DNA of 64,000 nt from Octopus bimaculoides (lineage: Eukaryota): assembly GCF_001194135.2 (NCBI RefSeq), contig NC_069002.1, positions 36,172,354 through 36,236,353 of the forward strand, written 5' to 3'. Numbering within the stretch: the first letter of the stretch is position 1; each line of letters begins with the position of its first letter. Shown here piece after piece: positions 14,793 through 64,000 of this stretch. Both the position numbers and the translations under genes were made by a program. Below the pieces are notes generated by a model, which worked only from the letters and a program-made list of their open reading frames with translations, was not told the origin of the DNA and did not search any database.

Positions 14793-15240
14793 ATAGCTAG
14801 ACAGATATGTATAAATCAATGTATATACATACATATGACATGTGTATATTTGTACATATGTGTGTGTATGCATATGTACGCACATACAGTCTTGTGGTGC
14901 TACAGTATGGCCGTACGCATAATAGATCGAATAGAGTAACTACAAATACCTCTATACAATTACCGACAGCATTACATGCGTACATGCACGCCCGTCTGCG
15001 TTCGTATATATATATACACACATATATATGCCTGTGTATACAGTTCTGTGTTTGTATAAAAATATATGTATATACGCAAGTGTGTATGTATGTTTTATAT
15101 TATATTATGATGGTGCAGGAAAGGTTAAGACACAGGTGTGAAGGAAGCTGGTATCAAATGACAAATGACGGAAAGTTGGAATGGCAGGGAAGGGATAATG
15201 CCTTTATTTATTTCTTGTTATTGCATCTCCACTGGAATTG

Positions 15241-16075
15241 ATAATGATGATGAGAAGGAGGGGGTGGAGGAGAGGGTTGGGTGTATGGTGAAGCTGATGA
15301 TGATGATGATGATGCAAAAGATGATGTCAAGGACAATAATAATGACGTTCATAATTATGACGACAACAATGTCGATGAGAACGATAACAGTGATGAGGAT
15401 GATGATGAGGATGATGATGATGATGTGATAATGAGGATTGTGATGGTAGACGTGGTGGTAATGATGATGATCGTGGTGATGATGATGGTGATGGTGGTGA
15501 TGGTGATGGTGGTGGTTGTTTTGGTAGTGGTGGTGGTGGGTGTGGTGGTCGTGGTGGGTGTGGTTGTGGTGGTGATGGTTGTGCTGGTTGTGGTGGTGGT
15601 CATGGTGGTACTGCTGGTGGTACTGACGGCAGTGGTGGTGGTGGTGGTGATGATGATATTGCCAACGATGATGATGATGATGGTCGTGGTGATGGTGGTG
15701 GTGGTTGAAGTAGCTTATTAATGATGATGTTAATGATGACTGTTGATGAGAACAACGACGGCGGCGGCGGCGGCGGCGATGTCGACGTCGCCGGTGGGGA
15801 TGATGGTTAAGAGCGGAGGTGATGACGATGACGATGATGATCATTTCGATGAGGATCAGAAGGTGTTGGTAGTAGTAGTAGTGGTGGTAGTGGCAGTGTA
15901 GGTGGGGACAACCGTTAGTACAATGGAAGCGAATTTGTAGTGGTAGCGGTCTCAGCAGCAGTAGCAGTTATAGTAGCAGCAGCAGTAGCAGCAGCAGTAG
16001 CAGTTATAGTAGCAGCAGCAGTAGCAGCAGCAGTAGCAGTTATAGTAGCAGCAGCAGTAGCAGTTGAATGAGAAT
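15241..16075. repeat. compound trinucleotide low-complexity tract (GAT/GGT/GGC/AGT/AGC)
   Basis: Successive (GAT)n, (GGT)n, (GGC)n and (AGC/AGT)n runs, with a 36-nt unit repeated 3 times at about 15958-16065. Confidence 0.95.
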
Positions 16076-60486: not shown

Positions 60487-60558
60487 ACATACATGCTTAC
60501 ATATATTGCCTATCTTCAATACCTTCTATTGTCGTTTCTTTATATTCACAGGTGCGTG

Positions 60559-60628
60559 ATGAAAACTATCATTGCTTTCTGTTTCTGCTTTTGCGTACTC
60601 ATTTCATACGCCTTGTCGTATAACGAAG
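60559..60628 (+). CDS. first coding exon of predicted small secreted protein (signal peptide)
   Basis: Acceptor TTTCTTTATATTCACAG (exon starts 60552), ATG at 60559, MKTIIAFCFCFCVLISYALSYNE, perfect donor AAG|GTAAGT, phase 1. Confidence 0.7.
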
Positions 60629-60744
60629 GTAAGTACACACAACTCCCTACTACTTTTTTATGTGTATGTGTGCGTGAAAGTGAAAAAGAGAGAGAGAGAA
60701 AGCGCTAATCAGAGGAAGGAAGGTATTGCATTGCTTCTTTTCAG

Positions 60745-60816
60745 ATTGCCGGATGGGGCTCTATATTCATGTCTTCAGTTTGAACCCCTCTGGGTTTTTG
60801 ATATATGGAAAGAAAA
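60745..60816 (+). CDS. second coding exon (phase 1-1)
   Basis: Acceptor TTGCTTCTTTTCAG and donor AAA|GTATGT after a 116-nt intron. In frame: DCRMGLYIHVFSLNPSGFLIYGKK. Confidence 0.65.
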
Positions 60817-61499
60817 GTATGTATAATTAAGGCAAATATTAAATTGCCATGGAGTTGTCTTAAATAATAGTAATAATAATGTTAATAATAATTCTTTCTA
60901 CTGGAAGCACAAGGCTTCAAATATGGGGAAAGGATTAAGTCGAATTCCATCGACCTCAGTGCGTTACTGGTACTTATTTAATCGACCCTGAAAGGATGAA
61001 AGGCAAAGTCGACCTCGGCGGAATTTGAATTCAGAATGTAAAAACGGACGAAATAGCGCAATGCATTTCACCTGGCGCGCTAACGATTTTGCCACCTCGA
61101 CGCCTTAACAACAACAATAAAAATTATAATAATAATAATAATGAGTTATAGAGGAAATAGGCATAAAACCTAGTTTAATGCAATTGCAGAGAGCATTATT
61201 ACTAGAGAAACTGTGGGCGTTACGCGATATATTAAGAAATGCTAGAGACGTTGCGATTACTTAAAATAAACTCAAATAAATTCGACGTTTATAGAATGCA
61301 AGGATATAATCTTAAAAGTTATGTTTTAAGAAATGCAGCACGTAATGAAGACAATACGCCTACACATACGCAAGAAGCTACTACCAAGGCTGTTTCGAAC
61401 CGTTATCATTACGCCCGTACTGGAGTCTTGTGCGCCTGAAGACGACTATGAGCCTTTCACAGATATTTGGTAATACCTGTTTTAAGGTGCTTTTGACTA

Positions 61500-61878
61500 T
61501 TGGTGTGAGCTTCAGAAATAAGGTGGATGAGGAATTTTTTCCCAACCAAGCTCTTCGATCTTGTGTGATGTGATCTTTGCAGTGTGGGGCCGCGCATTGT
61601 CCTGATGAAACATCACTCCTTTTCGATTCACTAAAGCGGATAATTTTTTCTTCAAAGCTTGGTTCAAACGCTCTAATTGCTGACAGTAGACTTGAACATT
61701 GATTGTTGCATTAGGTGGTAACAATTCAAAGTGAATTACTCCTTTGCAGTCCCACCAGATAGAGAGAAGAACCTTTTTCCTATGAAGTTCCCTTCTTGGT
61801 TGTGGTTGAGCTTTTCCGTTTTACCAAGCCACTGTTTACGATGTTTAACATTTCAATAGAAGATCCATTTTTCATCCT
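61500..61878 (-). mobile_element. mariner transposase catalytic-domain remnant
   Basis: DEKWIFY*NVKHRKQW..KKVLLSIWWDCKGVIHFELLPPNATINVQVYCQQLERL..VMFHQDNARPHTAK..LGWEKIPHPPY. Cut at the DEKW motif by a SINE B copy (61878-62030, +). Confidence 0.92.
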
Positions 61879-62394
61879 AAGTTCAAATTCCGCAGAGGTC
61901 GACTTTGCCTGTCATTCCTTTCGAGATCGATCAAATAAGCACCAGTTGAGCAATGGAGTCTTGATGTAATCGATTAGCCTCTTCATGAGAAATTACTGGA
62001 CTTGTTACAAAATTTGAAACCAATACCTGATACAAAAATATTGTGGATAAGATTCCAAAGTTTGAAAATCTCGGGGAGAAATATTAGTTGAAGTTATTAG
62101 TGTGGAACCTGAGAGGGAAAGGGGTGAGAAAAGTAGAGCCGGATGTGTCGGGTTAACATGAGTGAAGTTGAGTGTTGTGTTAACTTGAGAGAAGATGCTT
62201 CGCGACTAACGACTGTAGAAGAGCATGTCATTGCAGGAACTGAAGATTATGCATAGAGAGAGGGGGAAGAGAGAGAGAGAGAGAGGATGCAGCACATCTG
62301 TGGGGTCTATGGGTCAGAAGTTTTTATAGTGTGGTGGTGAGTATGTTTATAGGAATGACACATATTTAATAGATGTATTCTCTATTGAGATTAT

Positions 62395-62620
62395 CGTAAG
62401 GCGGTGAGCTGGCAGAATCGTTAGCAAGCCGGGCAAAATCATAGCGGCATTTCGCCCGTCGTTACGTTCTGAGTTCAAATTCCGTCGAGGTCGACTTTGC
62501 CTTTCATCCTTTCGGTGTCTATAAATTAAGTACCAGTTGCGTACTGGGGTCGATCTAATCGACTGGCCACCTCCCTCCAAAATCTCAGGCCCTGTGCATA
62601 TAGTAGAAAGGATTATTATT
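62395..62620 (+). mobile_element. SINE family B, well preserved (partial copy follows at 62645-62715)
   Basis: TAAGGCGGTGAGCTGGCAGAATCGTTAGC...GAGTTCAAATTCCGTCGAGGTCGACTTTGCCTTTCATCC...(ATT)n tail. Confidence 0.92.
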
Positions 62621-62765
62621 ATTATTATCATTATTATTATTATTATTGGGATCGATGTAATCAACTTATCTCCTCTGAAAAAATTTCTGGCCTTGTGCCA
62701 AAATTGGAAACCAATACTGGGATTGCTGATCCTGCAACCGTCATGAAATTCATTCTATCCAACAG

Positions 62766-62848
62766 ACATTAGTGGAATTAAATCAATAAACCAAGAGATC
62801 GATATTAGAAGATATATTGAAATCAACAACTACATCAGTCCCTGTTGA
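62766..62848 (+). CDS. candidate terminal coding exon
   Basis: Acceptor TTCATTCTATCCAACAG. The phase-1 frame is open as NISGIKSINQEIDIRRYIEINNYISPC*. Acceptor is moderate and no nearby AATAAA was seen downstream. Confidence 0.45.
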
Positions 62849-63199
62849 TTTGTTGTACTATAATCATCAGAATCTTTTCAGTGTAGCATTAATATTTTTC
62901 TAACTTTCGGACAAGATTTAATGGCGGAAATTTAATTGTCGAATAACGAATAATAATTCTCGAGTGACTGAACAGAGCTGATTAAGCCAGATTGAATAAG
63001 CTTCTAAAGTGTTACGGTCTTAACCTAAAGTATATAATTTACTTCGACTATGTAATTGATATCTATTACTCTGTCACTTGCAATGCTTTCTAGAGCCCTT
63101 TCATTAATTTGCAACGAACCTAGGACTAAATCCTGGTTCCCTCTCTCCTTCTCTACCCATCTCTGTTTTTCATACTGCATTACTGCGTATTTAGCCAAT

Positions 63200-63460
63200 T
63201 AGTTCGGTGTTTGAATGCTTTCTAATTCTGAGGGTGACACTGAAACGGAAAAAAAATCATTTATTTCTGTTGTTGCTGCAACTACTTCTACTCTTGCAAC
63301 CGCACCGGTGGCAGACGCTGCTACTATTAATACGGCTGCCCCTATTACTCTATTTCAACTGAAATTACTACTACTGCTGCTGCTGCTGCTACTTCTACTA
63401 TTGCTGCTGCCAATGATGATGATGGTGACGAGGATGTCGATTACGGCTGCTATTTAGTTC
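63200..63460. repeat. (CTG/CTA/GAT)n low-complexity tract
   Basis: Direct sequence. Confidence 0.8.
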
Positions 63461-64000
63461 GTATGGTACAACTTGGTATTGGTCTTGTAGTTTAGCTCCA
63501 ATTCAACACCGTCTAAGCATTTTTCCCGTTAAAATTTTATATCACAGAGTAATTTTCAAAGAAGCCAACAGTGGGCATAGGTCAACCTGATGGTTAAAGA
63601 GAGGAAGTCTGAACCAATGTACCAATGTTGTGAATATCGTTACTACTGAAACAACACAACGCATATTTAGTCCTCATTCATATCCTGAATTGCGTCAAAT
63701 TCCATTAACATTATTTTCATCAAAATTTCTAGAGATACTTGAATATATAGCATATATTCAGATAGATTAAGTGCGACAGGGTTAGCCTTTTGAATTTCAG
63801 AAAGAGCCCGTAAATTATTGTAGTTAATGTAAGTGGTTAAATATTTCTGAGAGGCATGTGATCCATTCTTCATGTAAGCCTCTCAAAGAGTCAGCATAAT
63901 ACGGTGTATGATAAAGCTAACACTTTGAATTTGAGGCAGATTCCATTTAGTTCCCGAGCAGTTTCCGAATTTCAACTTCACTCATTAGGTTTGAATCAGC

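Follow-up and report, generated by a model that had tools for sequence, protein, structure and literature searches.

The window, by which we mean the whole stretch of 64,000 nucleotides of Octopus bimaculoides DNA analysed here, contains the first coding exon of a gene whose remaining coding exons lie past the window end. The gene is the octopus gene for a CCWamide (agatoxin-like, ALP) neuropeptide precursor, which had already been catalogued under the old model Ocbimv22001854. The window has 100% identity with the chromosome sequence CM046622.1 of O. bimaculoides (L002), a window position being the L002 position + 50558, and positions beyond the window are given as window equivalents. A preliminary description of this DNA had joined the exon to two further pieces to obtain a spliced gene for a 74-aa secreted peptide; these two pieces, both of which lie in intron 1, are written here in quotation marks as 'exon 2' and 'exon 3' to distinguish them from the exons of the real gene. 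Among the three pieces, the stretch from 60559 to 60628 is the sole genuine coding exon. Table 1 compiles the features of the locus.

Table 1. Features of the CCWamide gene and its surroundings, in window coordinates; a slash marks an exon boundary or, in the translated exon 1, the end of the signal peptide.
Feature	Position	Strand	Remarks
Orthologue of the 22-nt 5' exon (second upstream exon) of O. vulgaris isoform P0001	16508-16529	+	aaag/TAATAAGGTGTGAAGATAACAG/gtaggt; tblastn and blastn match
Exon 1, 5' untranslated start	60552-60558	+	acceptor ...tattcacag/G at 60550-60551
Exon 1, coding part, CCWamide/agatoxin-like precursor gene	60559-60628	+	MKTIIAFCFCFCVLISYALS/YNE and first base of Asp codon; GT-AG chain for P0002 on L002
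Intron 1, first 3,372 of 14,423 nt	60629-64000	+	from the exon chain on L002
'Exon 2' of the 74-aa model, open 72-nt stretch in intron 1	60745-60816	+	good splice-like signals
Interspersed repeat (SINE-like), first copy	60863-61107	.	inverted relative to 62397-62641
Degraded mariner-type transposase remnant in 'intron 2' of the 74-aa model	61515-61778	-	Pfam Transposase_1 (PF01359), 69.8 bits
Interspersed repeat (SINE-like), second copy	62397-62641	.	ends 125 nt before 'exon 3'
'Exon 3' of the 74-aa model, open stretch in intron 1	62766-62848	+	one of six terminal pieces closing the frame after 'exon 2'
Exon 2	75052-75106 (window equivalent)		outside the window; GT-AG chain for P0002 on L002
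Exon 3	75954-76025 (window equivalent)		outside the window; GT-AG chain for P0002 on L002
Exon 4	79494-79647 (window equivalent)		outside the window; GT-AG chain for P0002 on L002

The coding part of exon 1 translates with 100% identity into the first 23 residues of P0002, a protein of 116 aa annotated in O. vulgaris and O. bimaculoides; at the DNA level it differs from its O. vulgaris counterpart at one of 70 nt, synonymously. A predicted signal peptide with a hydrophobic core and an A-x-S (A-L-S) cleavage motif is encoded in this exon, which ends in the donor AAG/GTAAGT at 60628/60629 and is followed by a phase-1 intron. On its 5' side, the cross-species alignment reveals the same acceptor and polypyrimidine tract in O. 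vulgaris, and isoform P0001 of that species is read across this acceptor as ...EDN-RCV-MKT.

The same 116-aa protein is encoded by O. vulgaris OX597835.1 (L001) and by O. bimaculoides CM046622.1, and in each of them one GT-AG exon chain only reproduces it. In this chain, exon 1 is spliced in phase 1 to propeptide exons, and the mature eight-cysteine domain lies in the last exon. Exons 2 to 4 are found 14.4-19 kb downstream of exon 1, with exon 2 situated 11 kb past the window end, and the three introns of O. bimaculoides measure 14,423, 847 and 3,468 nt, with phases 1, 2 and 2; the exon structure of O. vulgaris matches, with introns of 17,926, 971 and 4,437 nt. In agreement with this arrangement, only residues 1-23 of P0002 match the window, and residues 24-116 gave no tblastn match anywhere in it. 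Over the full coding sequence, the two species differ at 6 of 351 nt, and all six differences are synonymous.

Given this gene structure, the preliminary description was correct about the first coding exon, the donor that ends it and the intron phase. It had rightly let a gene with introns, coding for the precursor of a small secreted peptide, begin here, and the hydrophobic signal peptide, the consensus donor and the phase-1 intron that it had listed all match the gene structure of P0002. Its proposal of a neuropeptide-type precursor was also correct, but the unrecognised, lineage-specific family that it had supposed is not supported; exon 1 belongs to a published CCWamide/agatoxin-like precursor.

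P0002 consists of MKTIIAFCFCFCVLISYALSYNE-DDLIADDLLQGDYEGLDKRDSSDVDRRAVRYDKLSRFLRINNRGKSKSHKNSCSKWQMACTTSSKRPDARCCSGLVCKCNIWGANCRCDDTLG. Residues 24-66 form an acidic spacer in which KR, RR and R-GK-SK sites occur, and the mature peptide is encoded entirely in exon 4. The eight conserved cysteines of the mature peptide are C76, C83, C94, C95, C100, C102, C109 and C111, and residues 76-114 match Pfam Toxin_9 (PF02819, spider toxin) with 25.1 bits against a gathering score of 21.3. The nearest solved structures, according to sequence matches to the PDB, are those of the spider knottins purotoxin-1 (2KGU, E = 0.002) and mu-hexatoxin-Mg2a (6AX2, E = 0.004). We aligned P0002 with six published CCWamides and an orthologue from Logan; the eight cysteines are invariant throughout, and the two asparagines and the terminal glycine are likewise invariant between P0002 and the bivalve, chiton, Lottia and two phoronid CCWamides.

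Spiralian CCWamides were unified with arthropod agatoxin-like peptides by Thiel et al. 2021 (PMC8557429). According to that study, the family is characterized by a non-conserved spacer, a cleavage site and an eight-cysteine C-terminal peptide in the last exon, by an aromatic residue between Cys6 and Cys7 and an amidated aromatic C-terminus and, as its hallmark, by a phase-2 intron between the second and third base of the basic codon before the last exon (PMC8557429). Judged by its sequence, P0002 conforms to this definition, except for a leucine where the aromatic amide is expected. The aromatic residue between Cys6 and Cys7 is Trp105, within CNIWGANC, and the last intron splits the codon of Arg66 (CGA) in phase 2, with exon 3 ending in ...AAC CG/gtaagc and exon 4 beginning with cag/A GGA AAA. 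The C-terminus reads ...DDTLG, where the residue before the glycine is not aromatic and is replaced by isoleucine in the decapodiform orthologues. The model Ocbimv22001854 is already part of the precursor set of Thiel et al. 2021, in which it adjoins the CCWamide of Idiosepius (PMC8557429). Evidence at the transcript level comes from a relative: the orthologue from Logan, P0004, is an uninterrupted protein of 117 aa encoded by a 990-nt contig (SRR24189504); it is 61% identical to P0002 and close to the Idiosepius sequence.

[quoted passage not shown] Spiralian CCWamides and P0002 are also alike in their last-exon peptide with eight cysteines, a CxCN(I/L/F)(W/F)GxNCxC core and a terminal glycine, and in the phase-2 intron within the basic codon ahead of the last exon. 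The octopus gene differs from them in its predicted amidated residue, which is leucine or isoleucine in cephalopods, and in having four coding exons instead of the usual three. As for the arthropod agatoxin-like peptides and U8-agatoxin (Toxin_9), their eight-cysteine spacing and Cys5-Cys8 motif match the mature octopus peptide. These agatoxin-like or knottin relatives occur in venoms or, in insects and crustaceans, as neuroendocrine peptides, whereas the octopus gene is the endogenous orthologue, with no sign of a toxin role in the data analysed. In a literature search on agatoxin-like peptides in octopus, the only hits were venom reviews, none of them specific.

The donor of exon 1 is joined over the 14.4-kb phase-1 intron to the three exons past the window end, and the product is a prepropeptide of 116 aa, composed of the signal peptide, the acidic propeptide and a C-terminal eight-cysteine knottin ending in glycine. 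By analogy with the family, signal peptidase would cut after ALS and convertases would cut at the basic sites of the propeptide; the terminal glycine would then give rise to a C-terminal amide, leaving Leu-NH2, and the knotted peptide may be secreted as a neuropeptide or hormone.

Upstream of exon 1, isoform P0001 of O. vulgaris has two small exons, which are joined at the acceptor equivalent to 60550-60551, the one implied by the start coordinate 60552 of the preliminary description. The second of them has its orthologue in the window (Table 1), where both splice signals are retained relative to the O. vulgaris exon; in O. bimaculoides this 22-nt candidate exon would probably belong to the 5' UTR of the CCWamide gene. 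The N-terminal extension of P0001, MLLQSPSVVITCEDNRCV, was considered as a coding start and rejected: the first upstream exon, which carries its ATG, lacks conservation in O. bimaculoides. We therefore let translation begin at MKT and assign the upstream exons to the 5' UTR. P0001 also swaps the knottin exon for an alternative last exon (...RGK-KIKRNGNYYSLQALLL) at L001 106853-106900, about 8.5 kb downstream. Its product would be without the mature CCWamide, and this form is either a prediction artefact or a real isoform.

Two other models of the same locus bear marks of their prediction or assembly. The old model Ocbimv22001854 carries an extra low-complexity insert of 68 aa, derived from L002 18516-18668 (window equivalent about 69.07-69.23 kb), with no counterpart in O. 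vulgaris and also missing from the current annotation; it is probably a mis-predicted exon. The insert maps to another part of intron 1, which had therefore already yielded one spurious exon. In O. sinensis, the RefSeq model LOC115232215 (P0003, 163 aa) has no signal peptide and begins in intron-derived sequence, because its contig VCDQ01004243.1 (L004) begins inside intron 1, and it is thus an artefact of a fragmented assembly. O. sinensis was likewise set aside as a third species for comparison. Its contig starts about 7 kb before the real exon 2 and for this reason contains none of the three pieces of the 74-aa model, exon 1 included; only repeat matches were obtained.

The extension of exon 1 through 'exon 2' and 'exon 3' was reproduced as it had been described. 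The pieces of 70, 72 and 83 nt join into 225 nt without a stop and encode exactly the 74 aa that had been quoted, with splice-like signals at all four borders (AAG/gtaagt, ttcttttcag/A, AAA/gtatgt and tccaacag/A), and the acceptor before 'exon 2' equals that of the real exon 2 in quality. These features would favour an O. bimaculoides transcript in which the three pieces are joined to encode a 74-aa precursor cut at GKK and RR, but the comparison with O. vulgaris speaks strongly against it. 'Exon 2' differs between the species at 5 of 72 nt, always non-synonymously (C25W, L29P, Y30F, F34S), and 'exon 3' at 6 of 83 nt, with five non-synonymous changes. Of the 11 differences that the two pieces carry over 155 nt, 10 are non-synonymous; two of the 10 create stops, the sixth codon of 'exon 3' being changed from AAA to TAA and its final TGT to TGA. 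The ratio of non-synonymous to synonymous differences is thus 10/1, compared to 0/6 in the real coding sequence (Fisher p = 0.0006). The identity to O. vulgaris, 93.1% in 'exon 2' and 92.8% in 'exon 3', equals that of the flanking intron (90.5-93.2%), and the 'intron' between the two pieces is transposon debris. When 5.8 billion proteins were searched with the 74-aa product, only two candidates emerged, both of them O. vulgaris hypothetical proteins matching residues 1-24 only; no protein in this set shares words with the 'exon 2' or 'exon 3' pieces, whose peptides occur in no annotated or assembled protein searched. No family was matched in a Pfam scan of the product, and tblastn and blastn searches for paralogues of the three pieces in the window found none, returning only low-complexity Cys/Val/Ile noise.

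The join is also one among many that chance provides. When a simple, modest filter for splice signals was applied, the 3.4 kb after exon 1 yielded nine complete stop-free three-exon models, six of which use 'exon 2', while eight control non-coding stretches of equal length from the same window yielded between 9 and 192 (mean 67). Joining the three pieces in this way does not exceed what is expected by chance, and we consider a transcript encoding the 74-aa precursor to be exceedingly improbable. Neither annotation, databases nor conservation support the 'exon 2' and 'exon 3' portions of the claimed product, which diverge as the intron does, and the signal-peptide exon is joined to a different downstream exon to form the known, longer protein of 116 aa. 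The details of processing that had been derived from the model are not supported either. The amidated peptide YNEDCRMGLYIHVFSLNPSGFLIY-NH2 and the C-terminal YIEINNYISPC would come from a precursor frame with an in-frame TAA in the O. vulgaris 'exon 3', and the two-chain disulphide product would depend on two mature cysteines, neither of which is present in O. vulgaris, where Trp stands in place of Cys25 and a stop in place of the terminal Cys. GKK and RR are retained in that species, but the neighbouring intron is equally 93% identical, and such motifs (GGA AAG AAA and AGA AGA) would be readily yielded by A-rich sequence.

'Exon 2' deserves to be considered by itself, as a cassette that the CCWamide gene might optionally include in frame, maybe at a low level or in particular tissues. 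Its 72 nt are a multiple of three, its acceptor and donor are conserved, and with both of its flanks in phase 1 and its frame open in the two species, it could now and then be included without a frameshift; 24 residues would then be added to the propeptide after the signal peptide, and the mature peptide would be unchanged. Nevertheless, none of its five substitutions is synonymous and some are radical (C to W, L to P, F to S), its identity is not above that of the flanking intron, and conservation of the splice motifs is expected anyway at 93% neutral identity. It is also missing from the annotations of both species and from the squid-like transcript of P0004, in which the signal peptide leads directly into EELIADDLL. 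For these reasons, we regard the cassette as very unlikely, and we allow only a slim chance that 'exon 2' is a young, octopus-specific alternative exon or that the 74-aa product is a newly born peptide, restricted to O. bimaculoides, on a borrowed signal-peptide exon. By far the best explanation, which we hold with high confidence, is that the CCWamide gene has its signal-peptide exon at 60552-60628 and that 'exons 2 and 3' are parts of intron 1 that are open by chance, free of stops and with splice-like flanks, which lie amid transposon debris and would be non-functional.

The locus is therefore that of a known gene, of which only the first coding exon lies in the window and which had been wrongly extended by chance through its intron. 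The main value of this result is that of a correction, in which a plausible 'new secreted peptide' is replaced by a known CCWamide gene and two chance open stretches. In the AT-rich, long-intron DNA of cephalopods, the splice-like motifs near a genuine signal-peptide exon almost always allow it to be prolonged into a stop-free 'gene', and a single comparison with another species suffices to reveal such a false extension. No receptor or function of CCWamide/ALP has yet been established in any animal (PMC8557429, PMC13311285). Cephalopods could serve as a useful system for its study; the octopus gene is already catalogued, and its interest in this respect is modest.

The window is AT-rich, with about 35% GC, many microsatellites and assembly gaps that add up to 2,234 N; long ORFs with coding character are absent from it. 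The runs of N are located at 14.2-14.8, 16.7, 28.3-28.7, 33.6, 40.1-40.5, 43.4-43.8 and 57.9-58.7 kb and are mostly flanked by (TA/CA)n. Much of the window consists of TG/CA-rich and AT-rich simple sequence, which accounts for spurious ORFs that are long and have a high content of Y, I, C and V. The two copies of the SINE-like repeat in intron 1 are 78.5% identical and opposite in orientation, with many more copies in L001, L002 and L004, and the frame around the transposase match is broken by stops. Two further ORFs were observed at a distance from the gene. On both strands of 15218-15844 there is a long low-complexity ORF pair rich in His, Asp and Val, whose minus-strand member is of poly-His type and has 208 aa; the pair looks like a trinucleotide-type repeat rather than a gene. 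On the plus strand, a 91-aa ORF at 42105-42380 matches HTH_24 with 20.4 bits and HTH_Tnp_IS630 with 16.8 bits, both under the cut-off, and from these weak matches to IS630/mariner-type N-termini it is probably a further mariner-family remnant.
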